Shown: positions 29,291 through 60,673 of the stretch, piece after piece
How positions within the stretch are numbered: position 1 is the stretch's first letter
How the letters are laid out: the number at the start of each line of letters is the position of its first letter
Translations under genes and position numbers: made by a program
Notes under the pieces: model-generated
Told to the model about the DNA's origin: nothing
Seen by the model: the letters and a program-made list of their open reading frames with translations, nothing else
Databases searched by the model: none
NCBI GenBank assembly: GCA_002104905.1
Contig: MCFE01000227.1
Location: 58,436 to 122,435 of the forward strand
DNA from: Basidiobolus meristosporus CBS 931.73
Taxonomy: Eukaryota; Fungi; Basidiobolomycota
Direction: 5' to 3'
Length of the DNA stretch: 64,000 bases

Positions 29291-29665
29291 AGGAACGAGG
29301 AACCCGAGAAATTTTGACAATCATAATAACCCCACCCCAACCATGTATTCCGCACCTTAGAACCAGAACCCCTCCGAATAAATAGCTCTTTGACCCCTAT
29401 CTACGTCGTTCTCACCTTTTAGTACACCACCTGGTTCGTGTGATAGCAGTGCTGTTGAGGTGCCAGGAGGATTTCATAAGTAGGCAGTGGACCAGGCCCT
29501 TTACCCCTCGTCCCCTATCCAATCCTCATACGATACCATGTACATACAATGGGAATATATTAATTGGAATAGCATGTTTATTGGTATACATCTTTGCGAT
29601 CCATTGGAATGATTCAATCGGAGGCAGTACCAACAAATTACAATCAACCTATCCGGTGGCATGAC

Positions 29666-31195
29666 TCACTGCGCCCTCTTCAAGCAGATGTTCACATCGG
29701 CCTTGATGAGGCCAAGCACCTTGGCGCGTGCGACAATGTCATCGCACGACCACTTATCGGCGTCTCCCTTGGACCAGTCACTGGCTCCCTTCACCCCAAG
29801 GCAGACGTTCGCGCGGATTTTGAGTCCGAGGATGTTCAGGCGAGCCACGATGTCGTTGCACTCGTCGGAGTCGCTGTTCTCGTCGCCACCTAGTCTTCCA
29901 CCGCGGAGGGTATTCTTGAGGCAGATGTTGACGTCGGCCTTGATGAGACCAAGCACCTTGGCGCGTGCAACAATGTCATCGCACGACCACTTATCGGCAT
30001 CTCCCTTGGACCAGTCACTGGCTCCCTTGACTCCAAGGCAGACATTGGCATCCACTTTGAGGCCAAGCAGGCGAAGGCGAACCACGATGTCATCGCACTC
30101 GTTGTGCTCTCCATCGCCGCCACTTGGCCGTCCACCGCCGAGGACGTTCTTCAAGCAGATGTTGACGTCGGCCTTGATGAGACCAAGCACCTTGGCGCGT
30201 GCAACAATGTCATCGCACGACCACTTGTCGGCATCTACCTTGGACCAGCCACTGGCTCCCTTGATTCCAAGGCAGACGTTGGCGTCCACTTTGAGTCCAA
30301 GCAGGCGAAGACGAGCCACAATATCTTCACATTCATCGTAGTCTCCGTCACTGCCGCTGCTTGGCTGCACACCACCAAGGACATTCTTCAGGCAGACGTT
30401 GACATCGGCCTTGATCAGGCCAAGCACCTTGGCGCGTGCAACAATGTCATCGCATGACCACTTGTCGGCATCTCCCTTGGACCAGCCCCTGGCTCCCTTG
30501 ATTCCGAGGCAGACATTGGCGTCCACCTTGAGCCCAAGTAGGCGCAGGCGGGCCACGATATCGTCACACTCATTGTAGTCGCCATTATCGCCACCATGAC
30601 CATTCTCTGGAAGGATTGACACCAAGCCATCGTTGCTACCTAGTATCGGACCAAGACACACCTTGGCGTCAACCTTGATCCCAAGAAGGCGACCAACGCG
30701 GACAAGATCCTCGCATGACCACTTGGAATAATCGTCGTCATCGTCGTGCCCGTTGCTCAGCACCCCCTTCTCTATCTTCCTTCCGAGGCACACGTTCACG
30801 TTCGCCCGGACCTTCAGCAACTTGAGTCTGGCCACGATGCCGCGACATCTGCGCTCACTCTCCTCCTCGTCGTAATCATCACCACGTTTCTTCAATCCTC
30901 CAATACACACATTCGCGTCGACCTTCACCCCGAGGGCCCGAACTTTGGCCACCAAGGCATCACACAACAGATCAGCTGGATCGTACAGATCTGCCTCGTC
31001 GCTACCCCCATCTCCACCGGGACGACCCTCGCACAGGTCGAGCCCGAGGTTCGCGTGGTAACGGGTATTCAGATGGGATAACAAATCCTGGCAGTAATTC
31101 AATCCACCTGGGGGGACGTATCCTCTCTCCACGACCAAGCTGGATGCAAGAAGCGCACTGGACAGAACTAACAAAAGGCAGTTGGCGGAGAACAT
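29666..31195 (-). CDS. Secreted Cys-pair modular repeat protein A (509 aa from the ATG, 12 modules)
   Basis: Intronless ORF; hydrophobic signal peptide MFSANCLLLVLSSALLAS; alternating ECDDIVARLRLLGLKVDANVC and WSCDDIVARAKVLGLIKADVNIC modules; TATAAAA upstream. Confidence 0.88.
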   Translation of the reverse strand: MFSANCLLLVLSSALLASSLVVERGYVPPGGLNYCQDLLSHLNTRYHANLGLDLCEGRPGGDGGSDEADLYDPADLLCDALVAKVRALGVKVDANVCIGGLKKRGDDYDEEESERRCRGIVARLKLLKVRANVNVCLGRKIEKGVLSNGHDDDDDYSKWSCEDLVRVGRLLGIKVDAKVCLGPILGSNDGLVSILPENGHGGDNGDYNECDDIVARLRLLGLKVDANVCLGIKGARGWSKGDADKWSCDDIVARAKVLGLIKADVNVCLKNVLGGVQPSSGSDGDYDECEDIVARLRLLGLKVDANVCLGIKGASGWSKVDADKWSCDDIVARAKVLGLIKADVNICLKNVLGGGRPSGGDGEHNECDDIVVRLRLLGLKVDANVCLGVKGASDWSKGDADKWSCDDIVARAKVLGLIKADVNICLKNTLRGGRLGGDENSDSDECNDIVARLNILGLKIRANVCLGVKGASDWSKGDADKWSCDDIVARAKVLGLIKADVNICLKRAQ

Positions 31196-32299
31196 TTTGC
31201 ACAAGTCTATCGTCTAAGGCAGAGGCGGAGGCGGAGGAGGGGGAGGAGGATACGCTTGGTTGTTGTGTGAGGAATGAACCACCAGATGGCCGGGTTTTAT
31301 ACCGGACCCATCAGGCAACACCGCCCCTTAGCGCCGCGTCCAACATGACTCTAGATAATACCCGATTGGAATGCGGAGAAGCACCGATATGGTCTAGCAG
31401 AAAAGAGAGACTAATTGTCCAATGTGGCGTATCCCCTTGCTTTAATTTACCATTATCACCCAACCATTATCCTAACCACCATCGGGGTTTCAGATGGGCC
31501 ATTGGCTTTCCGGTATGGCCCACACACCCACGCACCTCCCTGATCATCACCGGACGAAGCCAAATGTGGGCTTCCAATGGATCTTGCATTAGACCAGACT
31601 CGGCTCAATGCTTATTGCCCGCTGTACACTTATGCAGAGGGAATTCATAGCCCCGATAATGCCACTTGACGCATCCCCCTGGTGTGACCGTCCCCAAGCT
31701 CCCAAACCGTGCCAGTCGGCGGGGAATCCAGCTGGTTAGAAATGAAGCGCATCGGTTGGTGGTGGGATGCGAGGTGATGCATATGGTGAATTAGGGACGG
31801 GGTCACGTTGGGTTCATGATGAAGAATCTCACGAAGCTTTCCAACTGCTGTACACCGCCGCCATGATCATGAGGGAGATGGCAATAGTCTGGATAATGGG
31901 GATCTTGATTTTCCCCTATTACCGGTGGAGTATGCATCCCTCCATTTGTACCGATGTGCCCTAGCACAGTGCATTAGTGTGGACCTCGGGGAGTTGGAAC
32001 GAATCCCATCTATATGATGCAAGTCACTTTAGTGATGAATGAGAAGCCTTTCCATTGTAAGTACGCTACATAATGAACGGCGATTATTTCATTTCTACTA
32101 GACCATATCGGTGCTTCCCCTCATTCCAATCGGGTGTTATCTAGAGTCATGTTGGACGCGGCGCTAAGGGGCGGTGTTGCCTGATGGGCCCGGTATAAAA
32201 CGCGGCCATCTGGTGGTCCATTCCTCACACAACAACCAAGCGTATCCTCCTCCCCCTCCTCCGCCTCCGCCTCTGCCTTAGACGATAGACTTGTGCAAA

Positions 32300-34048
32300 A
32301 TGTTCTCCGCCAACTGCCTTTTGTTAGTTCTGTCCAGTGCGCTTCTTGCATCCAGCTTGGTCGTGGAGAGAGGATACGTCCCCCCAGGTGGATTGAATTA
32401 CTGCCAGGATTTGTTATCCCATCTGAATACCCGTTACCACGCGAACCTCGGGCTCGACCTGTGCGAGGGTCGTCCCGGTGGAGATGGGGGTAGCGACGAG
32501 GCAGATCTGTACGATCCAGCTGATCTGTTGTGTGATGCCTTGGTGGCCAAAGTTCGGGCCCTCGGGGTGAAGGTCGACGCGAATGTGTGTATTGGAGGAT
32601 TGAAGAAACGTGGCGATGATTACGACGAGGAGGAGAGTGAGCGCAGATGTCGCGGCATCGTGGCCAGACTCAAGTTGCTGAAGGTCCGGGCGAACGCGAA
32701 CGTATGCCTCGGGAAGAAGTTGGAAAAGGGAGTGCTGAGCAACGGGCACGATGATGACGACGATTACTCCAAGTGGTCATGCGAGGATCTTGTCCGCGTT
32801 GGTCGCCTTCTTGGGATCAAGGTTGACGCCAAGGTGTGTCTTGGTCCGATACTAGGTAGCAACGATGGCTTGGTGTCAATCCTTCCAGAGAATGGTCATG
32901 GTGGCGATAATGGCGACTACAATGAGTGTGACGATATCGTGGCCCGCCTGCGCCTACTTGGGCTCAAGGTGGACGCCAATGTCTGCCTTGGAGTGAAAGG
33001 GGCCACTGACTGGTCCAAGAGAGATGCTGACAAGTGGTCATGCGATGACATTGTTGCACGCGCCAAGGTGCTTGGCCTGATCAAGGCCGATGTCAACGTC
33101 TGCCTGAAGAATGTCCTCGGTGGTGTGCAGCCAAGCAGCGGCAGTGACGGAGACTACGATGAATGTGAAGATATTGTGGCTCGTCTTCGCCTGCTTGGAC
33201 TCAAAGTGGACGCCAACGTCTGCCTTGGAATCAAGGGAGCCAGTGGATGGTCCAAGGGAGATGCCGACAAGTGGTCGTGCGATGACATTGTTGCACGCGC
33301 TAAGGTGCTTGGTCTCATCAAGGCCGACGTCAACATCTGCTTGAAGAACGTCCTCGGCGGTGGACGGCCAAGTGGCAGCGATGGAGAACACAACGAGTGC
33401 GATGACATCGTGGTTCGTCTCCGCCTGCTTGGTCTCAAAGTGGATGCCAATGTCTGCCTTGGGGTGAAGGGAGCCAGTGACTGGTCCAAGGGAGATGCTG
33501 ACAAGTGGTCGTGCGATGACATTGTTGCACGCGCCAAGGTGCTTGGTCTCATCAAGGCCGACGTCAACATCTGCTTGAAGAATGTCATCGGTGGTGGCCG
33601 GCCAGTTGGTGGTAATGATGGAGAGCACAGCGAGTGCGATGACATTGTAGTACGCCTTCGACTTCTTGGACTGAAGGTAGATGCCAACGTCTGTCTCGGA
33701 ATCAAGGGAACCGGAGATTGGAGCAAGTCACGTATCGAGAACTCCAAGTGTGAGGACATCGTCGCACATGCCAAAGTGCTCGGGATCATCAAGGCTGATG
33801 TAAACGTGTGCCTAAACAACGCCAGCCGCCCAGACCAAATTGCCGAACACTTCAACGAATGTGATACCATCGTGGCCAGACTTCGCGTACTCGGTATCCC
33901 TGTCGCCGCCAACATCTGCCTCAACATCAAGGTCGACGGCAAGCTCACCAAAGAGGAGATCGACAACATGAAGTGCGAGGAGATCACCGCTCACGCCAAA
34001 GCCCTTCACATCCTGAAGGCGGATGTCGAGGTGTGCCTTGTAAAATAG
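32300..34048 (+). CDS. Secreted Cys-pair modular repeat protein B (582 aa, 14 modules), inverted duplicate of A
   Basis: Intronless ORF nearly identical to A over the first ~430 aa, with more divergent distal modules; ~200 bp of promoter is also duplicated in inverted orientation. Confidence 0.88.
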   Translation: MFSANCLLLVLSSALLASSLVVERGYVPPGGLNYCQDLLSHLNTRYHANLGLDLCEGRPGGDGGSDEADLYDPADLLCDALVAKVRALGVKVDANVCIGGLKKRGDDYDEEESERRCRGIVARLKLLKVRANANVCLGKKLEKGVLSNGHDDDDDYSKWSCEDLVRVGRLLGIKVDAKVCLGPILGSNDGLVSILPENGHGGDNGDYNECDDIVARLRLLGLKVDANVCLGVKGATDWSKRDADKWSCDDIVARAKVLGLIKADVNVCLKNVLGGVQPSSGSDGDYDECEDIVARLRLLGLKVDANVCLGIKGASGWSKGDADKWSCDDIVARAKVLGLIKADVNICLKNVLGGGRPSGSDGEHNECDDIVVRLRLLGLKVDANVCLGVKGASDWSKGDADKWSCDDIVARAKVLGLIKADVNICLKNVIGGGRPVGGNDGEHSECDDIVVRLRLLGLKVDANVCLGIKGTGDWSKSRIENSKCEDIVAHAKVLGIIKADVNVCLNNASRPDQIAEHFNECDTIVARLRVLGIPVAANICLNIKVDGKLTKEEIDNMKCEEITAHAKALHILKADVEVCLVK

Positions 34049-34615
34049 ATGGGCCACCCAGCGCCCAGTCGATATCCTCCCTGGAAGGAAGCATATTCAG
34101 GGAGGGAGCAGGAATGTTTGCGATATAGCGAAACAATTTTACCACCTTCTTGTGATTTTGATTTTACTCGAATAGAACTTTCAAACTCATAAGATACCAT
34201 ACCAATAAAGGGCGAAGTTATCGTACACGAAGTGCCGCACCATCTCTTCATCCTAACCATACTCCCAAGGTGGCTTTTGTTATGTGGAATCTTGATAACC
34301 ATATACGTTGAGGCTATGGAGGGCTTAGGTTCCAATGTGATGGCCATTCCTGTCTGTGCAGTGCTACAGGTATCATCGATGGGGACTGTGAAACGAGAGA
34401 GCCCTGATGTGTCTTTCATGAAAGTGGTTTATTTTTGGTACTTCCTACGAATCCATGAAAAGAGATGGGGGAAAATCCGAGGGAGAGTATGCATGATGAA
34501 GATGATGTGAAGTGAATGTCATGAAGCGGAGCAATGTTTGAAGCGGAATTTACAGTGGATATGTTTCATTAAGCGTTGGAAAATCAGTACCTAAACATTC
34601 TCCTGGGTTTGATGC

Positions 34616-37104
34616 TTAGTTGTTAGCTTCAGCCATCTTGTTCAATGCAGAACCGGCCTTGAACCACTCGATTTGGTTCTCGTTGAAGGTGTGGTTGACG
34701 GGGATCTCGATCTTCTCGCCGGACTCGCGGGTGACGCGAAGGGTCAATGGCTTGCCGGGGGTGAAGGTGGTGAGACCGACGATGGACACCTTGTCGGAGG
34801 GCTTGATCTTCTCGTAGTCAGCGGGGTCAGCGAAGGTCAAGGGAAGAACACCTTGCTTCTTCAAGTTGGTCTCGTGAATACGAGCGAAGGACTTGGTAAT
34901 GACGGCGATACCACCCAAGTGACGAACTTCGAGGGCGGCGTGCTCGCGGGAAGAACCTTCACCGTAGTTCTCGTCACCGACGACGACCCAGCTGATGCCC
35001 TTGGCCTTGTAGTCTCTGGCAACGGCGGGAACGGCTCCGAATTCACCGGTCAAGACGTTCTTGATGTTGTTGGCTTCTCCGTTCTCGGAGTTAATGGCAC
35101 CGATCAACATGTTGTTAGAGATGTTGTCCAAGTGACCACGGTACTTGAGCCAGGGACCGGCCATAGAGATGTGATCAGTGGTGCACTTGCCCTTGACCTT
35201 GATCAAGACGGGAAGATCTTCGGCGTCCTGGCCGTTCCACTTGGCGAAAGGCTCAAGGATTTGAAGTCTGTTACTCTCGGGGGATACCTCAACCTTGACG
35301 GTGGAGCGGTCCTCAGGGGGGGCTTGGTAGGTGTTCTCACCAGCGTCGTAACCGCGAGGGGGAAGTTCGGCACCGTGGGGAGGAGTGAACTTGAACTTCT
35401 TGCCGTCGGCACCAGTAAGCTCATCAGTGATGGGGTTGAAGCAAAGGTCACCGGCGAAGGACATGGCAGTGACGAGCTCAGGGGAAGCAACGAAAGCGTG
35501 GGTGGCAGGGTTACCGTCGTTACGTCCGGTGAAGTTTCTGTTGTAGGAGGTGATGATGGAGTTCTTGTCACCCTTCTTGATGTCTTGACGATCCCATTGA
35601 CCGATGCAAGGACCGCAGGCGTTGGCGAGAACGACACCACCGGCCTTGTCGAAGACCTCCATTTGTCCGTCACGCTCGATGGTGGCACGGATTTGCTCGG
35701 AACCAGGGGTGATGGTGAACTTGGACTTGACTTGGAGTCCGTGGTCAAGAGCCTCTTGGGCAAGGGAGGCGGAGCGGGACATATCTTCATAGGAAGAGTT
35801 GGTGCAGGAGCCGATGAGACCGACCTTCAATTCACTGGGCCAGTTGTTCTTCTTGACGGTTTCGGCGAACTTGCTCAAGGGAGTGGCAAGATCGGGAGTG
35901 AAGGGTCCGTTGATGTGTGGCTCCAATTCGGAAAGGTTGATCTCGATGACGTGATCGTATTTGGCACCCTCATCAGCACGGAGGTTGTGGGCGAACTCCT
36001 CAGAAGACTTGGCGATGTGAGGACGGCTGGTGGCACGGAGGTAGTCACCCATACGCTTGTTGAAGGGGAACACGGAGGTAGTGGCACCGATTTCGGCACC
36101 CATGTTACAGATGGTAGCCATACCAGTGCAAGACAAGCTCTCAACACCAGGGCCGAAGTATTCGACAATAGCACCAGTTCCTCCCTTGACGGTCAAGATA
36201 CCAGCAACCTTCAAGATGACATCCTTGGCGGAGGTCCAACCGCTGATTTGGCCGGTGAGCTTAACACCAATGACCTTGGGGCACTTGAGTTCCCATGGGA
36301 TGTCGGCCATGACGTCAACAGCATCGGCACCACCAACACCGATAGCGCACATACCCAAACCACCAGCGTTGGGGGTATGGGAGTCAGTACCGATCATGAG
36401 ACCACCGGGGAAAGCATAGTTCTCGAGGATGATTTGATGGATAATGCCGGATCCTGGCTTCCAGAAACCAAGACCGTACTTGGCGGTGGCGCTGGCCAAG
36501 AAGTCGTAGACTTCCTTGTTGATGTCCTTGGCCCTGGCCAAATCCTTGGGGCCACCCAACTGAGCCTCGATCAAGTGATCGCAGTGAACGGTGGAGGGGA
36601 CGGCAACTGTGGGAAGACCAGCGGAGATGAATTGAAGAAGAGCCATTTGGGCGGTGGCATCTTGGCAAGCAACACGATCAGGTCTGAGCTTGAGGTAGGA
36701 GGAACCACGCTCGATGTCTTGGTTCTTGGCATCGTCCAAGTGACCGTAGATAATCTTCTCAGCAAGAGTAAGGGGATGGTTCAAACTGTAGAGCAACCGT
36801 TAGTACGAATGTAGCAGGGATCCAGTTCAACCAGGGTACTTACCGATCTCTGATGATGGCCAAGTTGTCCTCAATTCTTTGGTAGTTGATGTACTTGTCC
36901 TTCTCCAAGTTGGAGATGGACACCTTTTGAGGAGCAACACCACCGGTAGCGGTAGCTAAGCCTCTGGCAGAGACTGCCTTGCGTACAATAGGAGAGAAGT
37001 TCTACAGGAGAAAAATCGGCGGTGGTTAGACTCGGGGGGTATGCAACAGAGAGGAGGCATTGAATTGAACATACTCTAGAAGCACGACTGAAAGTAGACA
37101 TCAT
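34616..37104 (-). CDS. ACO1: Mitochondrial aconitate hydratase, 3 exons, 785 aa
   Basis: Exons 37104-37075, 37001-36844, 36785-34616; Arg/Ser-rich presequence; [26 protein letters not shown] and NACGPCIG Fe-S ligands, GSSREHAA. Confidence 0.97.
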
Positions 37105-38495
37105 CTTCGTTGGATGATGAAAGAGAAGCAGACAGGGTTGTCGGAAATGAGTGTGGGGTGTGGCTATTTGTAGGTTTTTCGAGATGCTTTCGTTCCACCA
37201 ATCAGCAGATCGTTGGAAAAATTTTAAATCCTCATTATCTATGGATAAGACCGATTGATACCCGGGTAAAATAGCATCAACTCAACCATCGTCACGCGGC
37301 ACGGTAACGTCGCTCTAAAGAGCAGATAAACCTGATTGTCAACATACGTACTACAATACCCAATGGCATATTTCTGGTGTGAATGCACAGGGATTCTGCC
37401 GTCCGTGGCTACAGGATTGTCATTCCACTGAGCCAGTTGTGATTAACTTGTGCGCCCCGAAGGTCAGCTGCAGCAGGTATATTATTCACCTTCAAATTCG
37501 GGTCATTTAGCGAGGTGGTGTCTGGCAAGTGAATGCACGTGCTGACGAAAACGAAATTTCGATTACTTAATAGCCAGTGTTGACACACACCTCAAAACGG
37601 AAGGGGTTAAGAAAAATTAGCACTTAACCCCTTCCTATTCGGATGCTGGAGCAGCGAGCCAATCAACAGCCTCCAAACCGGATGCCCATTTCCATCAAAA
37701 TGCTCTGTTTCTCCGCGCCTTAATAGGTTAAATATATATTGTATCCAGAGTCACAGGATGGTAATACCTAACGAATCCTAGTGGCTTTGAGCATTCCCCT
37801 CCCCCAAAACCACGCCACCTTCCCCCAGAAAATTCTGCTTGCATTATTTTCCACTCACCCACCCATGCTTGCTTTCATGCCCGCTAGGCCAGCGCCGAAA
37901 GTCTGGTAGAGAGTAGTGAAGTGTGTCGGATGTGACGTACCGTTATTTGATGATTTCCATTTGGCACTGTGAGAATGGATGCTCGGATAAATTCGTCTGA
38001 CACTTATTTCATCGGTGCCCCATAAATTTCACTACATTACGTCGGGATATGGTCTCGGGCTTCTAATTTGACAGCTCATTTATTGAGGCCCAACTGTCAA
38101 ATCTGTCACCGTAATCGGCTTTCGATTTGGTTTGACCACATTATTCGCTTTCCGAGACTCGGCTTTCGTTCTTTTCTATGCGCCGATTCTACGTCGACCG
38201 ATGTTGGGCTTTCCTCTGCTCCTTAGTGGTTGGTACCACTAGGATACTCTGTTGAGCCCTCTTTCGGTAGTGTAACATGTAGTTGCTTTATTGGATACCG
38301 TTGAGCCCGGATTCGCTTTCTCTGTCCTTTTGTTCGGCTAAATCAATTGCGCTTAGCCTCCATTTATTTTTTACCAACCGCGACCGTAGGAAGATTCATG
38401 GAATTACGTATTTCTGTATCATTGTGCGTATCTTTATTCAGGGTGTTTATCTTTATCCAAGGTATGCTAGCTATACACCGGTAACTCGGGCATCT

Positions 38496-39326
38496 TTAAG
38501 TGAATACAACTGGTTTGTCCATGCATGCCACACGCTTGATTGGTACCTGATGCTCCTCAAGTTTGCTTGCCACTTTGTTGCACAATTCTGGATCACCACG
38601 ACCAGTTGCTTTCGAAGCGTCGAGCGAGTCGCTCTCTCCGACGCATCTCCAGGTCTGTGGCGAGAATCCTTCCGCAGTTAGTACCTGCTTGACAAGGTCG
38701 CACTTATTGATGGTCTTGGTGACCTTGTCTGTAGGATCAGCACGCTTTCTGAATTCTCTTCTCGCTTTTGTCCGCTTCTCGCAGACATTTCGATCGATTC
38801 GCACCCCCAGAATGTTCAATTGCCGAATTAGTCCATTGCAGTCATATTGTGATAGGTCATCTTCTGGGGCGTGAGTGCCACCTAGCAAAGGCTTGACCGG
38901 GTCGAGGGCGACACTGACACACACACTTACCAAGGGCTTGTGCGTGTATTGCTGAAGTCTTTGGATGATGTCTTCACACCGGTCCTTGTACTTGCCCTTC
39001 ACCTCGTCGAGAGTGCCGACACCATTCTTGTCTACCGAACAGACATGTTCATCAACAAGGACATCTCGCTCTCGAAGATCCTTCAGAAGTTCGTGGCAAC
39101 CAAGACTGCTTGGGTCGGGTAATTCAGTCTCCCCAGCACTGCTGTCAGGAATGTTGAGGCATTTCTCCAGGGGAAGCTCGGCTTTGTACCGAGTGTTGAG
39201 GTGAGACACCAGATCCTGGCAGTAGTTCAACCCGACTGGGGGAGTGTACCCTCTCTCCACTACGTAGCCCGAGGCTAGAAGAGCACTGGACAATACGAAC
39301 AACAGGTTGTTGATTGAAAGCGTCAT
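38496..39326 (-). CDS. Secreted Cys-pair modular protein C1 (276 aa, 6 modules)
   Basis: Signal peptide and VVERGYTPPVGLNYCQDLVSHLNTRY shared with A/B; six C-x(18-20)-C units; TATAAATA upstream. Confidence 0.85.
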   Translation of the reverse strand: MTLSINNLLFVLSSALLASGYVVERGYTPPVGLNYCQDLVSHLNTRYKAELPLEKCLNIPDSSAGETELPDPSSLGCHELLKDLRERDVLVDEHVCSVDKNGVGTLDEVKGKYKDRCEDIIQRLQQYTHKPLVSVCVSVALDPVKPLLGGTHAPEDDLSQYDCNGLIRQLNILGVRIDRNVCEKRTKARREFRKRADPTDKVTKTINKCDLVKQVLTAEGFSPQTWRCVGESDSLDASKATGRGDPELCNKVASKLEEHQVPIKRVACMDKPVVFT

Positions 39327-40225
39327 GGCAGCACTCGACACAATGAAGAGAAGGATACTGAAGGCACGAATGATGTTGACGATGCTGTGGCTGGCTATTT
39401 ATACAGTCCATCGGTCTGTTTATGCGGAAGACTTATCTCAGTCACCACATGGAAGTTGGTAACAATGGGAGCTTATCGAAATCACCGAAGGATCAATGAA
39501 GGCATGACGTCATCAGCAACTCCTTTTTTCCAGTTGTAATGTAGGTACGAAGATGCCTCGATGGCCCCTGGCTTATTCTAGCTTTAGCTGGCCATAGAGT
39601 CAATGCATTGCTAGGACTGACTTCAGGAGGTTCTAATATTATCCTCACGAATACAGCGCTCAGACTTGAAGATGCAGCATGTAACTAGTTCATTGAATGG
39701 GATTCCTGGTTGGGGTTGCGAAAGGTTGGTAACGCTTTTCATTGGCTATGGTCAATTTTTGGTTTAAGTTCGTGCGCATTATAGAATATATGTGATTTGA
39801 ACGGAGGTGACCGTCATAGCCTACCACCGTCGATCATTCAATATTCTGGAATACAAACCGACTACCGTCGCAGTGATCACTATTCAGCATCAAGTGTGCA
39901 TTACCATTGATGGTGTCGGAGTGTCTTCTCGTCATCAGCCAAATGAAATGAATAGCTTGAATCAATACCACCCCACTACAACTGACCTCTGGGCTGTTTC
40001 ATGAAGGCCCTTTCCTAGTACGGGAATCTTAGTAGGGAAAATATAGATTTCTGCTTGGATTTTGATTTCAAGCAAACAGGGGTTATGTGCAACACCACAA
40101 ACTCCTTTCTCAAGAGGAATGCCACGGATATGCAATGGGTGGGTTATTGGGCAAATGTTGGTGAGAGTTTATTGGGTTATCTTTATCCAAGGTATGCTAG
40201 CTATACACCGGTAACTCGGGCATCT

Positions 40226-41056
40226 CTAAGTGAACACAACTGGCTTGTCCATGCATGCTACACGCTTGATTGGCACCTGATGCTTTTCAAGCTTACTCTT
40301 CATGCTATTGCACAATCCTTGATCACCACGACCAGTTGCTTTCGAAGCGTCGAACGAGTCGCTCTCTCCGACACACCTCCAGGTCTGTGGTGAGAATCCT
40401 TCAGCGGTCAGTGCTTGCTTGACAAGATCGCACTTATTGGCAGTCCCAGGTGCTTTGTTTGTAGGGTCAGCGCGCTTTCTGAATTCTCTTCTCGCTTTTG
40501 TCCGCTTCTCGCAGACATTTCGATCGATTCGCACCCCCAGAATGTTCAATTGCCGAATTAGTCCATTGCAGTCATATTGTGATAGGTCATCTTCTGGGGC
40601 GTGAGTGCCACCTAGCAAAGGCTTGACCGGGTCGAGGGCGACACTGACACACACACTTACCAAGGGCTTGTGCGTGTATTGCTGAAGTCTTTGGATGATG
40701 TCTTCACACCGGTCCTTGTACTTGCCCTTCACCTCGTCAAGAGTGCCGACATCATTCTTGTCTACCGAACAGACATGTTCATCAACAAGGACATCTCGCT
40801 CTCGAAGACCCTTCAGAAGTTCGTGGCAACCAAGACTGCTTGGGTCGGGTAATTCAGTCTCCCCAGCACTGCTGTCAGGAATGTTGAGGCATTTCTCCAG
40901 GGGAAGCTCGGCTTTGTACCGAGTGTTGAGGTGAGACACCAGATCCTGGCAGTAGTTCAATCCGACTGGGGGAGTGTACCCTCTCTCCACTACGTAGCCC
41001 GAGGCTAGAAGAGCACTGGACAATACGAACAACAGGTTGTTGATTGAAAGCGTCAT
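40226..41056 (-). CDS. Secreted Cys-pair modular protein C2 (276 aa), tandem duplicate of C1
   Basis: Duplicated block ~38446-39615 vs ~40186-41348; 15 amino-acid differences from C1. Confidence 0.85.
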   Translation of the reverse strand: MTLSINNLLFVLSSALLASGYVVERGYTPPVGLNYCQDLVSHLNTRYKAELPLEKCLNIPDSSAGETELPDPSSLGCHELLKGLRERDVLVDEHVCSVDKNDVGTLDEVKGKYKDRCEDIIQRLQQYTHKPLVSVCVSVALDPVKPLLGGTHAPEDDLSQYDCNGLIRQLNILGVRIDRNVCEKRTKARREFRKRADPTNKAPGTANKCDLVKQALTAEGFSPQTWRCVGESDSFDASKATGRGDQGLCNSMKSKLEKHQVPIKRVACMDKPVVFT

Positions 41057-41356
41057 GGCAGCACTCGACACAATGAAGAGAAGGATACTGAAGGCACGAA
41101 TGATGTTGACGATGCTGTGGCTGGCTATTTATACAGTCCATCGGTCTGTTTATGCGGAAGACTTATCTCAGTCACCACAATGGAAGTTGGCAACAATGGG
41201 AGCTTATCGAAATCACCGAAGGATCAATGAAGGCATGACATCATGAGCAACTCCTTTATTTCCGGTTGCAATGCAAGTAAGATGCATCGATGGCCCCTGG
41301 CTTATTCTAGTTTGAGCTGGCCATAGAGAACGAATGCATTATTTAGGAATCAATAT

Positions 41357-41383
41357 CACACACACACACACACACACACACAC
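41357..41383 (+). repeat. (CA)n microsatellite
   Basis: Direct reading; a second (CA)n tract lies at ~52647-52670. Confidence 0.9.
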
Positions 41384-41517
41384 CTATATGATATAATCTC
41401 TATAAAACATGTGTATATATATATTGCAGAATATGTCTAGTTTATTCAAAAGGTTGGGAATAGGCTGGAGTGTATGTTGGAATGTATGCTGGTATAAAGC
41501 ATAGGAAAACTTGATAC

Positions 41518-42585
41518 TCAAACGACAATCAATGGTTTGCTTAAACACTTGACCATCTCAACCTGAAGACCATACTCATTAATCAACTGCTTGATTCTGT
41601 TGCAGTGCTTCAGGTTGGCAGGCCGTGAGAGGCTCTCATAATTCATCAACTTCTCATTCTCTGTACAGATGAAAGTGTTGGGACGAACGCCCCTTAAGTG
41701 TAGCTGGTCTTTGATTACACGACAGGTGGAATGAGCCACTGCTCGGCGGAAGAGATTGTGCTCAGGGCGATCAACTCCACTCAAACATACATCCACATTG
41801 ACTCTGAGGATACCCAGTGCCCGGGCGTGTGCCGTGATATCTTGGCATCCCATGCGAGCGATCTCCTCCCGAGAGAGTCTGCTTTGTCTTCTCAACCCAA
41901 GACATACATCCACATTCACGTTGATTCCTAGTACGTGGAGTCTTGCGACGATATCTGGGCAGCTTCGGCGTTCTCTCTCCTCTTCAACATGACGACCAGT
42001 GCTGAGGAAGGCAAATCTACCACCTTCACCACTGGCCCAGTTTTCATGATCAAGACATACTTTCTCACTAACAGTTATTCCTATCACCCTTGCTAACTCA
42101 ATAGTGCTTCTGCAGGTTAATCTGGAATAGTCCACGTCTCTCCATCCCATCCTTCTGAAACCATCTTGGGATACTTGCTGACACACTTCACGCTCCACCT
42201 CAACATGGAGCTCCCTCAGCCTCTCAACAATCCTTTGACAATGATGCTCATGCTCGTTTTCTCTTCCGCCTTCCCTACTGGGCACCTCATTTATGGGACA
42301 AACTAGAACACCAACACGAATCCCGTGTTCATGTGCCTTTCGAACGAGTTCGTTACACTTCAACTCGGCAGGATCGCGTAGCTCGGAATCTCCATTGCTG
42401 ACGGCAGGAAAGTCGGCTACGCACTTCTCAACGGGGATACCTGCCGAGTAGCGAGTGTTCAGATGGGTCACCAATTCCTGACAGTAGCTTGTCCCAACCG
42501 GAGGGGTGTAGGCTCTCTCCACCACATGGCCAGAGGCTAGAAGCGCGCCAGATACGATGAACAAAAGCTTACCGATAGAAAGCAT
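41518..42585 (-). CDS. Secreted Cys-pair modular protein D (355 aa, 8 modules)
   Basis: Signal peptide; VVERAYTPPVGTSYCQELVTHLNTRY; modules such as SCPDIVARLHVLGINVNVDVC and GCQDITAHARALGILRVNVDVC; TATATAA upstream. Confidence 0.85.
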   Translation of the reverse strand: MLSIGKLLFIVSGALLASGHVVERAYTPPVGTSYCQELVTHLNTRYSAGIPVEKCVADFPAVSNGDSELRDPAELKCNELVRKAHEHGIRVGVLVCPINEVPSREGGRENEHEHHCQRIVERLRELHVEVEREVCQQVSQDGFRRMGWRDVDYSRLTCRSTIELARVIGITVSEKVCLDHENWASGEGGRFAFLSTGRHVEEERERRSCPDIVARLHVLGINVNVDVCLGLRRQSRLSREEIARMGCQDITAHARALGILRVNVDVCLSGVDRPEHNLFRRAVAHSTCRVIKDQLHLRGVRPNTFICTENEKLMNYESLSRPANLKHCNRIKQLINEYGLQVEMVKCLSKPLIVV

Positions 42586-42857
42586 TCTTGAGATGTTCAC
42601 CCTGGTGGAGAAAAAGAGAGCAAGAAGAGTGGGGATTCGTTATGTGGAATCGCCCGCTTATATACGGAATTGGTATATTTTCTGGCAGGCAATAGGGCGT
42701 ACCTCTATCATCCATCAGCCCACCCTTTCGGGAGTTTAGATACACCACCTGAATCGCATCCAGACAATAGGATCAAAGCACATCGGATAGTTGCATTGCT
42801 GGAGAACAATCGTGTCGATACTTTAATGAAAAGAACATTGGGGGGAAGGGACGGGGG

Positions 42858-43664: not shown

Positions 43665-44643
43665 TTACCAATCGTTGACAGCGCAAGCATGAATGCTGCT
43701 ACTGTTTTGAGTGCATTGACCTCCGCGGTCCAACGAGAAGCTCCAGTTGTGCTTGGAGCAGATCAGATTGTTTCCAACGACAATTCCCTGTTCGAGGTGA
43801 GTGTTAGTACTTCGGAACGGGTGGCGTTTGTGCTGGTGGATTACCTTGGAGGAAAGATCGACCCTCTTATGTGGGCAGTATCTATCCACTTCGTATACCT
43901 GTCCATTGCCCGCCGACACTCTGATACGGTTGCCATTGGCCTGAATACGGCCGGGTCCGGGGAGATACTTGAGTCTATTTTGGTTTGGGTTGTCTACTTT
44001 TACCAAACCAGCATTCTTGTTGCTGGGGGATTCGCTGATCTCCTCTTCGGAAGAACTGCTGGAGCTGGAACTCATACTCTCCGCCAGCTTGGCCTCACTT
44101 CCATTCCCTGGTTCCTGCGAGCGCAACCCCTCCCTTGCCAAGCGCTTCTCCATTTTCTTTTGCTTTTTCTTGATCTTTTTCTCGATCTTCAATCGCCGAT
44201 ACTCCTCCTCTGATGGATAGATATGAGGATCTGGGACACACTAGGTCGAATGAAGAGGATTTGTTTCGTACCTGGTTTGGCCAATCCGATCTGGATGGAT
44301 TTCTTTAGCAAATCCTTGACAAGTGGTAGAAGTTCGATCACCTATTCGCGCGGGTTGAATAGACGTGTCGATATGGTGAGTTTGTACGCTCCAGTGTGAA
44401 ATCCCAACCCTTTCTTCAACTTCGCTTACCTTCCAGCTCTCTTCGCTGAGATCCCTCAAATCTCGAACCGCATATAGTCGATGTTTCTCTAGTATGGTCA
44501 AATCATCGTTGACATCCTTACGGTTCCAACTTCTCTCGGAAGCGATTTGCTCCAACAGAGTGGATGCTTTCTACGGGAAGCGTCAAACCGCATTAGCCTC
44601 TTGGTGTAGTGCAAAAAGGGACGCCCCGAACGAGCCGTACCAT
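43665..44643 (-). CDS. Rieske [2Fe-2S] domain protein with N-terminal helical domain, 5 exons, 233 aa
   Basis: Exons 44643-44641, 44570-44430, 44341-44272, 44209-43845, 43787-43665 join in frame; Rieske ligands CPH...CSKH at the C-terminus; Lys-rich and Ser-rich linker. Confidence 0.78.
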
Positions 44644-45674: not shown

Positions 45675-47180
45675 TTAACAGGAACAATGGCAGGTACCTC
45701 TTCGGGAGTGGTGTTCAACGGAATCAACGACGGGTACCTCCTCGGGAGTGGTGTTAACGGGAGCAACGGCAGGCACCTCTTCGGGAGTGGCGTTAATGGG
45801 AACGATGGTAGGAATCTCTTCAGCGGTGGCCATTTGTTCAGGCGCACTAGTCATTTTCTCGCCCTTTTCGGCGTCGTGTCCATGACCATGAGCAGGCTCC
45901 ATGAATCCGTAGGCAGTTTCTCCCAAAATGGCAAGATCGGTACCAAGATCTTCCTCATCATCGCGGAGACGGAGACGAAGTCCGCACTTAAGCATCACCC
46001 AAAGAATAAGATAGGTCATTCCGAAGGACCAGACAGAGGATGCGGCAATAGCGGCCATTTGGATGGGCAATTGGATCCAGTGTCTGTCGAACCAGCCACC
46101 GAGGGGAACATTGGTGGCACCTGGGGGATATCCCATAGCAATGACTGCTTGCTCGGCAAAGATACCGTTCATGAAAGTACCTACGATACCACTCACGTAA
46201 TGGACGGCGAACACATCGAGGCAATCATCGAAGGGGAACAAGATGTTCTTGTACAAGACACAGACGTAGCAAATAATGGCTCCGAAGAATCCGAAAGCCA
46301 AAGAAGAGCTGGGGGTGACGAATCCGGATGCGGGAGTGATGGTAGCAAGACCAGCAACAGCTCCAGTACAGATACCGACCAACGACCACTTCTTGGTACG
46401 AAGGAAGTCGATGTAGACCCAGACGGCTCCACCAACAGCTCCGGCAATGTGAGTGACGATGACAGCGTTGGCGGCTCTTCCGTCGGCAGCTCCTTCACTT
46501 CCTCCGTTGAAGCCGAACCATCCGAACCACAAGAAGGCGGTACCCAAGAACACAAAGGCAACGTTGTTGGGAGTGAAGTGACCGTGCTTGCTATAATCCT
46601 TTCTGTCACCGATCAAAAGGGCGTAGGCTCCAGCGGCAGCTCCTGATCCAAGATGCACAGCAATACCGCCGGCGAAATCGTGAACACCAAGTTGGTACAA
46701 CCAACCCTTAGGATTCCACACCCACATGGCAATCACGTTGTACACCAAGGTGGACCAGACAAACAAGAAGATCACAACAGGTCCGATCTTCATACGCTCA
46801 GCGGTAGATCCGAAGGCAAGGGCCGGAGTGATGATTGCGAACATGCACTGGTAGATGAAGTAGGTTCCACTGGGAATGGTGGGGGCGTTGGGATGAGGCT
46901 CATTGCCAACATGGCGGGCAATGATATGGTGCAGATTACCGATGAAGTTGTTGTTCGTAGTGACACTGTAGGTGAGAGAGTATCCCCAGAAGTACCACTG
47001 GATGGTGACCACACAGGTGGAGATCATCATGAGGAACATGAGGGAGAGGGTGTGATTAGTTCTGGCAAGACCACCATAGAAGAACCCGAGACCGAGGCAC
47101 ATGATGAAGACTAGGGCAGTGGATGTGAGCATCCACGCGTTATCGCCATGGTTGACGACGGAGGCTACGTTCAGGTCCAT
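45675..47180 (-). CDS. MEP: Ammonium transporter (Amt/MEP family), copy 1
   Basis: Intronless; GDNAWMLTSTALV, YQCMFAIITPAL, DFAGGIAVH, LWFGWFGFNGGS, GLATITPASG, DDCLDVFAVH; EExxGxD C-terminal motif. The C-terminal repeat tail is frameshifted at 45716. Confidence 0.95.
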   Translation of the reverse strand: MDLNVASVVNHGDNAWMLTSTALVFIMCLGLGFFYGGLARTNHTLSLMFLMMISTCVVTIQWYFWGYSLTYSVTTNNNFIGNLHHIIARHVGNEPHPNAPTIPSGTYFIYQCMFAIITPALAFGSTAERMKIGPVVIFLFVWSTLVYNVIAMWVWNPKGWLYQLGVHDFAGGIAVHLGSGAAAGAYALLIGDRKDYSKHGHFTPNNVAFVFLGTAFLWFGWFGFNGGSEGAADGRAANAVIVTHIAGAVGGAVWVYIDFLRTKKWSLVGICTGAVAGLATITPASGFVTPSSSLAFGFFGAIICYVCVLYKNILFPFDDCLDVFAVHYVSGIVGTFMNGIFAEQAVIAMGYPPGATNVPLGGWFDRHWIQLPIQMAAIAASSVWSFGMTYLILWVMLKCGLRLRLRDDEEDLGTDLAILGETAYGFMEPAHGHGHDAEKGEKMTSAPEQMATAEEIPTIVPINATPEEVPAVAPVNTTPEEVPVVDSVEHHSRRGTCHCSC

Positions 47181-47994
47181 TGTTGTATCAAACTTGACGT
47201 GAACTTCACTTGACGCTTTCACAGCCGATATTTATACATTCATGGTAAAGAAATGTTGCAACAGAAGGTGGCCGTACCTCAACATGAAAAAGGAATGTGG
47301 CTTCCTTCTAGACTGTTATTTGAACTCAACTGTTATCAAGACCTTCCGCACTCTTACTTTTGCTTAAAGAACCTTCCTCACAACGAAGCATTGGCCAATC
47401 AATCGCATCCGAGATCCGAATCTAAACAGAATTTTTTCCCAAAATGTGAAATGGAAATTTATTTGGAACTTGGTAATTATTGGATGTTTCCAATTCGAAT
47501 GTATTAATCAGAAATCGGTACCGGGATTGCGATTTGGTAGATATCCCTCTGCTCATTAGCCGATTTTGGGACTTGATTGATCTTAGAAAGTGCTACTCAA
47601 TTTGCATTTGCCATGTTGATCTGGATGGTGGGAGTGGTGTCGTTCCTAGGTCGCGGAAAAGGGGGTAAAACACGTGGTTGTTTACTCCATCCCACGACTT
47701 TGTTCAAAGCAAAGTAAATATGGAAATATGCAAGTAACTGAAACATTTACATAGCTTTAGTTCTTGCAGACGAGTTGTTGATAGATGGAATTCTGTGATG
47801 GAAAATGGGGGAGTGATTTGTTTTCATGAGTACTTTATTGTAAAGGTCTATTAGATAGGTATCTATATATGTATCCGAAAGAAACGACGCGTTCATAAAA
47901 ATATTACATTGAATAAAGAGATTGAATATCTGTCCGGGAACGCTCTCTAAGCTTGAACTATTCCCGAGTGTACAAGGAGGTACTCCACATTAAA

Positions 47995-49596
47995 CTACTG
48001 AGTTTCTTCAGCTGGAGTTTCTTCTGCACTAGGAGTGGAGACGACCGCTACTTCCGTGGCGGAAGTGGAGGATTCTCCTTCAGGTGTTTTCTGAATTTGG
48101 GTTATGGAGCCGGTCGATAGACGAGCAATTGAACCACTGGCCATTCCGATCATAGAGTTACGTTCGGCCTTGGCTGCAGCTGCAACTTCAGCTACTTCCG
48201 AGTTGGACGAAATTGGAACGATATTAGGTAATTCGGGGACTGCTTCCATTTGTTCGGGAGCACTGGTCATTTTCTCGCCCTTTTCGGGGTCATGACCATG
48301 ACCATGAGCAGGCTCCATGAATCCGTAGGCAGTTTCTCCCAAAATGGCAAGATCGGTACCAAGATCTTCCTCATCATCGCGGAGACGGAGACGAAGTCCG
48401 CACTTAAGCATCACCCAAAGAATAAGATAGGTCATTCCGAAGGACCAAACGGAAGCTGCTCCAATACCAGCCATTTGGATGGGCAACTGGATCCAGTGTC
48501 TGTCGAACCAGCCACCGAGGGGAACATTGGTGGCACCTGGGGGATATCCCATAGCAATGACTGCTTGCTCGGCAAAGATACCGTTCATGAAAGTACCTAC
48601 GATACCACTCACGTAATGGACGGCGAACACATCGAGGCAATCATCGAAGGGGAACAAGATGTTCTTGTACAAGACACATGCGTAGCAAATAATGGCTCCG
48701 AAGAATCCGAAAGCCAAAGAAGAACTGGGGGTGACGAATCCGGATGCGGGAGTGATGGTGGCAAGACCAGCAACAGCTCCAGTACAGATACCGACCAACG
48801 ACCACTTCTTGGTACGAAGGAAGTCGATGTAGACCCAGACGGCTCCACCAACAGCTCCAGCAATGTGAGTGACGATGACAGCGTTGGCGGCTCTTCCGTC
48901 GGCAGCTCCTTCACTTCCTCCGTTGAAGCCGAACCATCCGAACCACAAGAAGGCGGTACCCAAGAACACAAAGGCAACGTTGTTGGGAGTGAAGTGACCG
49001 TGCTTGCTATAATCCTTTCTGTCACCGATCAAAAGGGCGTAGGCTCCAGCGGCAGCTCCTGATCCAAGATGCACAGCAATACCACCGGCGAAATCGTGAA
49101 CACCAAGCTTGTACAACCAACCCTTAGGATTCCACACCCACATGGCAATCACGTTGTACACCAAGGTGGACCAGACAAACAAGAAGATCACAACAGGTCC
49201 GATCTTCATACGCTCAGCGGTAGATCCGAAGGCAAGGGCTGGAGTGATGATTGCGAACATGCACTGGTAGATGAAGTAGGTTCCACCGGGAATGGTGGGG
49301 GCGTTGGGATGAGGCACATTGTCGACATGGCGGGCAATGATATGGTGCAGATTACCGATGAAGTTGTTGTTCGTAGTGACACTGTAGGTGAGAGAGTATC
49401 CCCAGAAGTACCACTGGATGGTGACCACACAGGTGGAGATCATCATGAGGAACATGAGGGAGAGGGTGTGATTAGTTCTGGCAAGACCACCATAGAAGAA
49501 CCCGAGACCGAGGCACATGATGAAGACTAGGGCAGTGGATGTGAGCATCCACGCGTTATCTCCATGGTTGATGGGGGAAGCAACGTTCAGATCCAT
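47995..49596 (-). CDS. MEP: Ammonium transporter (Amt/MEP family), copy 2
   Basis: Core nearly identical to copy 1; different C-terminal tail and unrelated upstream sequence containing GATAAA/GATAAG sites. Confidence 0.95.
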   Translation of the reverse strand: MDLNVASPINHGDNAWMLTSTALVFIMCLGLGFFYGGLARTNHTLSLMFLMMISTCVVTIQWYFWGYSLTYSVTTNNNFIGNLHHIIARHVDNVPHPNAPTIPGGTYFIYQCMFAIITPALAFGSTAERMKIGPVVIFLFVWSTLVYNVIAMWVWNPKGWLYKLGVHDFAGGIAVHLGSGAAAGAYALLIGDRKDYSKHGHFTPNNVAFVFLGTAFLWFGWFGFNGGSEGAADGRAANAVIVTHIAGAVGGAVWVYIDFLRTKKWSLVGICTGAVAGLATITPASGFVTPSSSLAFGFFGAIICYACVLYKNILFPFDDCLDVFAVHYVSGIVGTFMNGIFAEQAVIAMGYPPGATNVPLGGWFDRHWIQLPIQMAGIGAASVWSFGMTYLILWVMLKCGLRLRLRDDEEDLGTDLAILGETAYGFMEPAHGHGHDPEKGEKMTSAPEQMEAVPELPNIVPISSNSEVAEVAAAAKAERNSMIGMASGSIARLSTGSITQIQKTPEGESSTSATEVAVVSTPSAEETPAEETQ

Positions 49597-50169
49597 CGCA
49601 AAATGTTCACAAATTAACGTTCTAACTGTACGACGATTTGCGCGAACCCGCAATTATATAGAAAAAAGAAGCCATGATAAAATAACCATATATGGCAATA
49701 AAAAACCTTTAGTTTTGATGACCAAATCAGGACGCTCAACGACTGTCTAGTTCAATCGAGTTTGGTTTGATAAGCCTGATTTGTCCAGCCATGGAATAGG
49801 GGCAGATGGATCATTCTATTATAGATGATTCAGAAATAGCACGTGTAAACATTTTGCGGGAAAACCAAAGATTTCGAAGTATATTTGCAAGAGGCGTTCG
49901 GAATTGGTGGAATGTATACTGATTCTGGTCAGGCCCTATGGTAGTTGCAGTAGAAAGCTGAAAGCAGTGACAGATGATGTAGGTAAAATATTTACCACGG
50001 ATGAGAAGACAGTATCCGTAGTCGATACCGCTAAGCCTTCACTGCCACTTTAGCTGGATCAATCTTTTTTGCTCCTCTTCGGTAGCAAAATTGCATAATT
50101 TACTCGATTTCCCAAAAATATTGAAATAAGGAAATTGAATGTTCATGTGGATTTCAACTGTAAACTCCG

Positions 50170-53995: not shown

Positions 53996-54004
53996 AACCC
54001 CTAA

Positions 54005-54125
54005 GTAAATGAATCTTAGACAAGTATTTTTTACTACACATATGATCCCAAGAGAAGAAATGCAATATCTGATCAATAGCGCTACTCTGTTGGTTGATGA
54101 GATGGAATTAGTGGGCACACAGTTA
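54005..54125 (+). mobile_element. Copia gag scrap abutting the 5' end of the pseudogene
   Basis: REEMQYLINSATLLVDEMELVG matches gag of the resident copia family. Confidence 0.6.
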
Positions 54126-54652
54126 GAGGAGGGAAGGTCACTGTTATGGTGAAACCTTTATTTTTTGTTAAGTAGTTACAAATATAACTGAAGCAACAAA
54201 ATAAATAAGCCAACTAAGAGTTTTTAAGTCTCTCAAGTAAATAATCTAATTTTTAATATTTTTTTGGGTAAGATTGCACAGAATTAAATAATGTTTGTCT
54301 TGAGAGAAGAGAAAGCTGAGGGGTGTTGGAGGAATCACAAACTGTAAGTGACACTTGTCTACATAATGAATATTACTGCAAAAGCCTGGAATCATGTTGA
54401 CTAGGGTCCTAATATAAACATTGAGAAACCTATCTAGACAGTAAAAATCATGGGTGGAGAATAGTGTCAGAGGGTGGAGAGTCAAAAAGTATTGATGCAA
54501 TCTTTGTTTGCAGCCTGGACTGAAACAAGCAAAGTATCCAGTAGGGATGTAGGTCCCTTATGCAACAAATCTAAGCTGAATTCAAAGCAGTATCACAGAA
54601 TATATCAAGTTCAGGGATACATGGGGAGGGGGGAGGGTGTAGATGTTATAAG

Positions 54653-59316: not shown

Positions 59317-60054
59317 GTTGCAGTGGTGAAGTCTGAGATATAATCTGGTTCTAAGGTAGAGTAGTCTGATCTTGTAGGGCATAAACCCAAAAGCACCAAG
59401 AATAGCATGTCTGTAGGGGCATTCAGGCAGATGAGGCACCAGGGATGTGATGCCCCAGACTGCAAACTTGTCATGCTTAGTGCAGTCTCTAGAAGTAAGA
59501 GAGAGAAGTGGTAAGCCAAATTCCAGGACAGGGAAGACAAACTGCTTGAGTAGAAGGAGGCAGCTGGGAGCTGAAGTTGTAAGAGGAGGTACAGCCAGTA
59601 GCTTGTGGAGTGCTTGTCTTGCCAGGATGATTCTCTTCTTCAGGTGTACTCTAGAGTCTAGTCCAGTAGGAAGGAAAGGAAAGCCAAGATATGTAGCAGA
59701 AACCTGAGCAGGTAGAGTGCAGCTGTCTAAGTTGATAGGACAACCCAAAGGTACTGTCTTTGCAATGGAAAGCTGGAGATTATTCTTCTGCAGATACTGG
59801 TGGATGGACTGGGAATCTTGTTGCACATTGGAGGAGGATATTCTGATGTCATCAGCAAAGAGAGTAACCAGGCAGTCAGCTGAGAGTCTTGGGAAGTCAT
59901 TCAGGAAGATGGCAAATAGTATAAGACCAAGCACAGAGCCTTGACCTACTCCATTAGGAACTGAGAACACAGCTGATTGCTCACTTGGGTGCAGAATTCT
60001 TGCTTGTGGATCCAGAAACAGAGACCTGACAAGGAGGGTGAGAGAGGTACTGGA
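59317..60054 (-). mobile_element. LINE RT fragment, same family as 61690-64000
   Basis: QGSVLGLILF...LFADD; closely colinear with 62115-62854; cut at both ends. Confidence 0.88.
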
Positions 60055-60673
60055 TGTTGTGCATCAACATTTAAAACTTAGCCAATTTTACTCCGTTTGA
60101 AAATCTAGTACCCTAACTGATTTTCCCTAACCCATACATAACAAATCCCAGTTACAGTTTATTTTATCCCACCTCAGAATCAATTTTTAGCTATCACAAC
60201 TGATCTATTTTCAAATGGGCATTATGTTATCAACCTATCTGCCAAGCCTTCCCAGGTGATTAGTCATCTGAGATCTATCCAACCACTGTGCAGTTGCCAA
60301 GACATCAGTTGATTGATGATGTAATTTTCATTTATCTTATGCACCTATGAACACCCAAATTGATTTTAATCAATCCAGTCCCTTGGCACTTACTAATTCA
60401 ACTTGATCAGAAAAGTAAAAATTAAGTTTACTAAACCTTTTGGTTTAGTGTGTGTCTCAACAAAATTAAGATTCCGTCTCAGCAAAAATATGAATCCAAC
60501 AATTCCGTTCTAGTTTCTATCCAAGCCTAGTATATCTAGCACTCCAAAGAACACCAAGCCTAGCCTGCCTAGCAAACAAATATCATTATCTTTATAGCCA
60601 ACCCAGCTACATCCAAGACCAATATTAGATCAGAATCTTTCTGCTAATATTTCCGCCACTCTCTGACAATTCT

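Follow-up and report, generated by a model that had tools for sequence, protein, structure and literature searches.

Gene cluster and protein architecture

We analysed a 64-kb stretch of the genome of Basidiobolus meristosporus CBS 931.73 (assembly GCA_002104905.1, contig MCFE01000227.1; hereafter, the window), in which the segment 29666–42585 carries a cluster of five intact, intronless open reading frames (ORFs) on both strands, encoding strings of small domains with four cysteines each. The genes, whose coordinates and lengths are reckoned from the first ATG, are A1 (29666–31195, − strand; 509 amino acids (aa)), A2 (32300–34048, + strand, divergent to A1; 582 aa), C1 (38496–39326, − strand; 276 aa), C2 (40226–41056, − strand, a tandem copy of C1; 276 aa), and B (41518–42585, − strand; 355 aa). 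We consider it very probable that they are functional paralogues of a real, selected, and undescribed family that is restricted to Basidiobolus. Four of the five proteins (A1, A2, C1, and C2) are letter-for-letter identical to NCBI entries of equal length annotated as hypothetical proteins, and the intronless models therefore agree with the public annotation. An earlier note on this DNA, made from the sequence alone, had described five intronless ORFs with a shared signal peptide and leader at these places, in agreement with both the ORF list and the translations.

All five proteins begin with a hydrophobic, signal-like stretch that ends in ..ALLAS[GS] and is followed by the conserved leader quoted in the earlier note, VVER[GA]Y[TV]PP[VG]G[LT][NS]YCQ[DE]L[LV][ST]HLNTRY. 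Small residues occupy positions −3 and −1 (A-S-G or A-S-S) ahead of the leader, as in signal peptides for the endoplasmic reticulum. After the signal peptide, A1, A2, C1, C2, and B contain 24, 28, 12, 12, and 16 cysteines, respectively, and these bound 12, 14, 6, 6, and 8 modules of the form C-x18-C or C-x19-C. The same module counts had been given in the earlier note and stood, but its placement of the modules wholly after the leader did not, as the leader contains the first cysteine of module 1. The number of modules is always even, and two successive modules form a unit of ~60 aa with four cysteines. A profile of this module pair matched A1, A2, C1, C2, and B 6, 7, 3, 3, and 4 times, respectively (per-domain E-values 1e-12 to 1e-25), and had no other match in the whole 64-kb window, which bears out the module pair as the unit, as previously proposed; we refined it further into four positional classes (d1–d4).

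Across the 43 family proteins collected, the intramodule cysteine spacing is constant at 18 or 19 residues, whereas the spacing ranges from 13 to 42 residues between the modules of one pair and from 8 to 100 residues between pairs. Since lone modules are also present in paralogues (P0023 and, in a shorter form, P0008), a disulfide within each module is the favoured pairing. The spacing per domain is thus x18/19, x13–42, and x18/19, and adjacent cysteines (CC) are absent. Among 56 aligned module pairs, the four cysteines alone were invariant; the other conserved columns were hydrophobic core positions and one glycine, and no conserved polar residue fit for catalysis or ligand binding was found in this alignment. 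The linkers between domains are Gly/Ser/acidic or charged, and the mature proteins are hydrophilic, with a grand average of hydropathy (GRAVY) of −0.1 to −0.56. In many modules, hydrophobic residues take turns with polar ones over the second half, and the hydrophobic moment at 170 degrees is high for the d3 modules; in modules of the d1, d2, and d4 classes, the alternation is weak. Dibasic sites occur at residues 103, 115, and 506 of A1 and at residues 103, 115, and 240 of A2, none of which separates d3 repeats. A single conserved dibasic site or cluster lies directly ahead of d4 in the B and C types (residues 184–195 in C1) and is kept in the orthologues from Basidiobolus ranarum.

The domain classes were taken from a maximum-likelihood tree of module pairs that included the B. 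ranarum counterparts. The tree is built on few columns and several of its forks are unresolved; only the four positional classes are firm in it. It sorts the module pairs by position and not by gene into d1 (the leader domain), d2, d3, and d4 (the C-terminal domain), each of which contains B. ranarum counterparts. By ORF, profile, and tree, A1 reads d1-d2-(d3)×4, and A2 likewise d1-d2-(d3)×5, both without d4. C1 and C2 read d1-d2-d4, an order shared with P0002, while B has the fullest architecture, d1-d2-d3-d4, in common with its B. ranarum orthologue P0001. An amplified d3 is also present in P0004, a partial A-type protein of B. ranarum.

Relatives and synteny in Basidiobolus

A HMMER search with the module-pair profile matched 26 representatives among 1.84 billion proteins, and all of the 16 hits whose source was looked up were from B. 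meristosporus or B. ranarum. A second profile search, based on the single-domain members, yielded 11 hits, again from Basidiobolus only. The identity between gene B and P0001 is 44%, and the B. ranarum orthologues retain every cysteine. Gene B adjoins a gene with a Rieske [2Fe-2S] domain (43665–44192, − strand), and a C-type gene of B. ranarum likewise adjoins a Rieske-domain gene (L001 1318–2610); this shared neighbour supports orthology and synteny between the two species.

Other four-cysteine proteins of the genus (ORX80994.1, ORX93878.1, and ORY04317.1) resemble those of the cluster in the 60-residue unit of two C-x18/19-C modules, the signal peptide, and the occurrence in tandem clusters, as well as in the restriction to the genus, the unmatched family and fold, and the helical prediction. 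The five genes differ from them in forming a subfamily of their own, with a highly conserved leader and d1, ordered classes d1–d4, and direct B. ranarum orthologues. The linkers of the cluster proteins are charged or acidic, whereas other family members have Gly/Asn or Pro-rich spacers. In the paralogues P0008–P0010, P0013, and P0014, the domain is joined to proline-rich, Pro/Tyr, or Gly/Asn/Tyr/His-rich low-complexity stretches.

Duplication history and selection

The earlier note had proposed that the cluster grew by inverted duplication, tandem duplication, and internal repeat gain, and all three were visible as repeats in the window. The left arm of the inverted duplication (29886–31406) spans most of the A1 coding sequence and ~210 bp upstream, and the right arm (32089–33609), which is 96% complementary to it, spans the A2 upstream region and the first ~1310 nt of coding sequence. 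The tandem duplication consists of unit 1 (~38447–39600; C1 and ~270 bp upstream) and unit 2 (~40177–41330) at an offset of 1730 nt. The internal array in A1 (29643–30584, − strand) comprises four copies of a 234–237-nt unit, i.e., one d3 with its Gly/Ser/acidic linker; that in A2 (32901–33824, + strand) comprises four in-register copies of 234–237 nt, and a fifth, more diverged d3 runs to 34045.

Long antisense ORFs also cross these arrays (29661–30341 on the + strand; 33154–33987 and 33038–33628 on the − strand). Being rich in Ser, Pro, Arg, and Thr, these frames are more likely a side effect of the repeat periodicity than genes.

In the tree, the d3 copies of A1 and A2 group together, and the last A2 unit is nearest to the single d3 of B; this grouping fits an array that grew out of an ancestral unit at the C terminus and was homogenised afterwards. 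Judged from the architectures, the C genes have lost d3, the A genes have lost d4 and amplified d3, and B has kept all four classes.

C1 and C2 differ in 4 of the first 190 codons (synonymous divergence, pS, 0.015) and in 33 of the remaining 86 codons (pS 0.41). This contrast between the 5′ and 3′ parts reflects homogenisation of the 5′ 190 codons, either through gene conversion or through a younger 5′ part. The ratio of non-synonymous to synonymous divergence (pN/pS) was 0.27 for A1/A2 and 0.23 for C1/C2, with values of ~0.2–0.3 in both parts of the latter comparison, and the genes are thus under purifying selection. Positive selection on the 3′ end of C1/C2 was considered and ruled out, as pN/pS there is 0.21.

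The same assembly contains another copy of the locus that has diverged slightly from the first (MCFE01000851.1, 5328–17029), where the order is P2X receptor, A1-like protein (509 aa), A2-like protein (582 aa), aconitase, and C-like protein (260 aa). Since this copy has both the A1-like and the A2-like gene, the inverted A1/A2 pair is not an assembly artefact. The copy itself represents a haplotig or else the product of a recent segmental duplication.

Transcript-like coverage

Transcripts had been proposed in the earlier note as a test of function, and transcript-like coverage was indeed observed on C2, on B, and on the 3′ end of C1. Read coverage was examined over 38400–42700, i.e., C1, C2, and B. 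Three public runs (X1, X2, and X3) contain this DNA; no RNA run is listed for gene B. Coverage by X1 and X2 is even across genes and spacers alike, save for a collapsed repeat, and both runs are genomic. X3 (27 Mb of contigs) covers gene bodies only within this region, with no joints. On C2 it extends over 40196–41085, i.e., the full gene with short untranslated regions, at a depth of ~1100, and on B it extends over 41456–42518, most of the gene, at a depth of ~25, while the spacers 39408–40127 and 41136–41423 are empty. The depth gap between neighbouring genes is roughly 40-fold.

By its coverage pattern alone, X3 behaves like a transcriptome. On that reading, transcription of C2, and probably of C1 too, is far deeper than that of B, and the transcripts of C2 and B are unspliced. 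The X3 contig shows four differences that fail to match C1 and may stem from the second locus copy on MCFE01000851.1.

Searches for known families and folds

The earlier note had recognised no described family, and our searches agree: profile searches of the 1.84 billion proteins, of Pfam, and of the PDB, as well as fold searches, gave no characterised family. In Pfam, the 15 members tested (the five proteins and ten paralogues) yielded sub-threshold noise only. The sole match of the PDB profile search by sequence was a designed helical repeat (E-value 0.007). Foldseek searches of the PDB, the AFDB clusters, and the ESM Atlas, together with a wide VIA-align search, gave no fold match, the sole good hit being a paralogue from the same genome. 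The best scores of a feature search in the ESM Atlas (0.56–0.61) were in the chance range. Resemblances to leucine-rich repeats, SAP/HeH domains, and saposin-like domains were dismissed, as no Pfam profile or fold matched. No description of the four-cysteine family was found in literature searches.

AlphaFold2 was applied to one d3 domain with the alignment of 56 domains. The resulting model (predicted local distance difference test, pLDDT, 74; predicted template modelling score, pTM, 0.59) has helices at residues 4–14, 21–24, 35–38, 43–52, and 60–63, loops, and no strand, which lends no support to the earlier suggestion that each module combines a helix with a beta-strand. A model of full-length B was poor overall (pLDDT 58) and not good enough for a fold search; in it, the domains came out better than the linkers, which were disordered. 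The four-cysteine domain is thus predicted to be small and mainly helical.

Hydrophobins (PF01185 and PF06766) are likewise cysteine-rich, secreted fungal proteins with small domains. They have eight cysteines in the pattern C-CC-C-C-CC-C with two CC pairs, a beta-barrel core, and a hydrophobic character, whereas the present family has four cysteines per domain, no CC, a predicted helical fold, and a hydrophilic composition. No hydrophobin match was obtained in Pfam (PF01185/PF06766 at E ≤ 1, 15 members), among PDB sequences at E ≤ 10, or among the fold hits. Hydrophobin identity was accordingly rejected, given that the eight-cysteine pattern is lacking and neither a profile nor a fold matches, in line with the earlier note, which had already set the proteins apart from hydrophobins. 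Several paralogues (P0009, P0033, P0034, and P0038, and likewise the AFDB entry A0A1Y1Y8H1) nevertheless carry the automatic name ‘Hydrophobin’ in UniRef or AFDB. This appears to be a mis-annotation, and one that might be propagated: the arrangement of cysteines, the hydropathy, the profile searches, and the predicted fold are all at odds with hydrophobins.

Kex2-processed repeat proteins (KEPs), among them the Ustilago Rep1 repellents, ustiloxin precursors, and alpha-factor, are defined by at least three tandem repeats, each bounded by KR, KK, RK, or RR (PMC7329392). The proteins of the cluster are similar to KEPs in having a signal peptide and tandem repeats, and the B and C types have their one conserved dibasic site. 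KEP repeats are split by Kex2 sites into short core peptides, whereas the d3 units are predicted disulfide domains of ~60 aa that are not so split. KEP membership of the five proteins was therefore ruled out, as no dibasic sites separate the d3 repeats. Other disulfide-rich secreted proteins with processed or flexible linkers, such as prosaposin and multi-Kazal inhibitors, likewise string together small domains fixed by disulfides, and those of saposins are helical. This is an analogy only; the number and spacing of cysteines differ, and neither sequence nor structure gave a match.

Proposed function and alternative explanations

The reading that we favour consists of four steps, given here in order of falling support. 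By their N-terminal sequence, the proteins probably enter the secretory pathway. Each module would be shut by its own disulfide, which would staple an amphipathic helix to the next hydrophobic segment, so that two staples would hold each domain together as a small knot, helical for the most part. The mature proteins would then act as extracellular beads-on-a-string scaffolds of the wall or matrix, in a structural, spacing, or adhesive role and not a catalytic one. Finally, proteins of the B and C types may undergo a single cleavage, at their conserved dibasic site ahead of d4. The part of this reading that comprises functional, Basidiobolus-restricted paralogues built as strings of domains, taken together with secretion, is held with high confidence. 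The reading as a whole is the best explanation at hand, and we would give it a little less than even confidence.

A structural or matrix role outside the cell is itself a tentative proposal that may well prove wrong. It is suggested by several features of the sequences: a structural role seems preferable to a catalytic one because cysteines, core hydrophobics, and one glycine are the only conserved positions, and the wall or matrix is suggested by the paralogues that fuse the domain to Pro-rich and Gly/Tyr/Asn-rich segments typical of wall and matrix proteins. The variable d3 copy number, the flexible linkers, and the apparently deep transcription of the C genes in culture are further, indirect grounds for this role. 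Several observations weigh against our reading. A glycosylphosphatidylinositol (GPI) signal, a Ser/Thr-rich stalk, and Pir repeats are absent from the five proteins, whose N-glycosylation sites are almost absent as well; thus, nothing shows by what means they would be retained in the wall. The AlphaFold2 model of d3 is of middling confidence, and the disulfide pairing was judged from the cysteine spacing and the lone modules. The weak look-alikes given by language models (chaplins, spidroins, and hydrophobins) score 0.46–0.61, in the range of chance. X3, judged to be a transcriptome from its coverage pattern only, carries the label ‘DNA?’, and the transcript check covered C1, C2, and B.

The near-identical tandem domains with their exposed linkers would also suit polyprotein precursors from which cleavage, whether in the Golgi or extracellular, would release single four-cysteine peptides, serving as antimicrobials, as effectors on the gut host or its microbiota, or as signals. 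The dibasic cluster before d4, conserved in C1/C2, B, and the B. ranarum orthologues, would agree with such processing, and according to a published report (PMC7329392), no fungus is richer in Kex2-processed repeat proteins than B. meristosporus. The earlier note had raised a polyprotein of this kind, but the proteins lack regular cleavage sites, the one conserved dibasic site being that which precedes the last domain in proteins of the B and C types. No KR, RR, KK, or RK is located between the d3 units of A1 and A2, where one KR falls inside a d3 of A2, and the definition of KEPs does not apply. The linkers are Gly/Ser/acidic and not basic, and the domains are not cationic; we regard this explanation as unlikely. 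Another rival would have amphipathic hairpins stack into films or amyloid-like rodlets, forming a self-assembling surface coat that would be the analogue of hydrophobins on aerial, forcibly discharged, or adhesive spores. Hydrophobins proper are described mainly from Dikarya. The hydrophobic/polar alternation in the second half of many modules, with the high moment of d3 at 170 degrees, would suit such stacking, as would the ‘Hydrophobin’ auto-names of several paralogues and the weak Atlas look-alikes, which are structural or surface proteins. A coat of this kind nonetheless seems highly unlikely: the d3 model has no strand, the alternation is weak outside d3, and no hydrophobin was matched by Pfam at E ≤ 1, by PDB sequence at E ≤ 10, or by fold. 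The overall hydrophilicity of the mature proteins also speaks against the stacking, hydrophobin-like amphiphile envisaged previously.

The layout of the proteins also resembles that of multi-domain Kazal-type inhibitors, and the loop between the second and third cysteines varies in both length (13–42 residues) and sequence, as might be expected of multi-headed binders (protease inhibitors or lectin-like proteins) that present a variable loop on a disulfide-fixed scaffold and protect the fungus in the amphibian or reptile gut. The gut lifestyle of Basidiobolus has been described (PMC9391592). We see only a slim chance for this role, as no family of inhibitors or lectins resembles the proteins in sequence or fold, and the near-identical d3 copies of A1 and A2 leave the loop undiversified, unlike in multi-specific inhibitors. 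That the ORFs are non-functional, being either chance frames in a repeat or decaying copies, deserves next to no credence. The long antisense ORFs through the A1/A2 repeats do show that repeats alone can keep frames open, but the pN/pS values of 0.2–0.3, the retention of every cysteine in the orthologues, the transcript-like coverage, and the syntenic locus all contradict it; in practice, it is refuted by the selection, orthology, and coverage data.

Basidiobolus is an early-diverging and phylogenetically awkward genus that inhabits the digestive tract of amphibians and reptiles and is an occasional cause of human infection. To our knowledge, its surface and secreted proteins have hardly been characterised. 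A sizeable, genus-restricted, apparently transcribed, and selected family of putatively secreted proteins with an unmatched, small, predicted disulfide domain offers a handle on Basidiobolus biology, and the domain may be a new fold. The bolder proposal that the module pair is a new fold invented within Basidiobolus, and that the family is the genus's own counterpart of hydrophobins and repellents in the form of a self-organising coat or glue, is distinctly unlikely. If it were true, the coat or glue would serve discharged and adhesive spores or survival in the reptile and amphibian gut, and amplification of d3 would tune the polymer length. Lineage-specific families of cysteine-rich secreted proteins are common in fungi, and as long as no function can be assigned, the present one is a sound find rather than a surprising one. 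What is new from the cluster is the leader-bearing subfamily, the ordered domain classes, the B. ranarum orthologues with their synteny, and the selection measurements. In addition, this one locus records how the family grows: domains were lost or amplified, genes were duplicated in tandem and in inverted orientation, and sequence was probably homogenised by gene conversion.

Neighbouring genes and base composition

An aconitase gene (34616–36796, − strand) sits between A2 and C1, without an evident link to the four-cysteine family; it likewise has an antisense ORF, of 713 aa. Downstream of the cluster are two tandem ammonium-transporter genes (45675–47222 and 47995–49653, both on the − strand; Pfam PF00909, E ~1e-106 each). 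The gene island that holds the cluster has a GC content of 0.46–0.55, and the AT-rich flanks (1–26000 and 54000–62000) have a GC content of 0.37–0.41.

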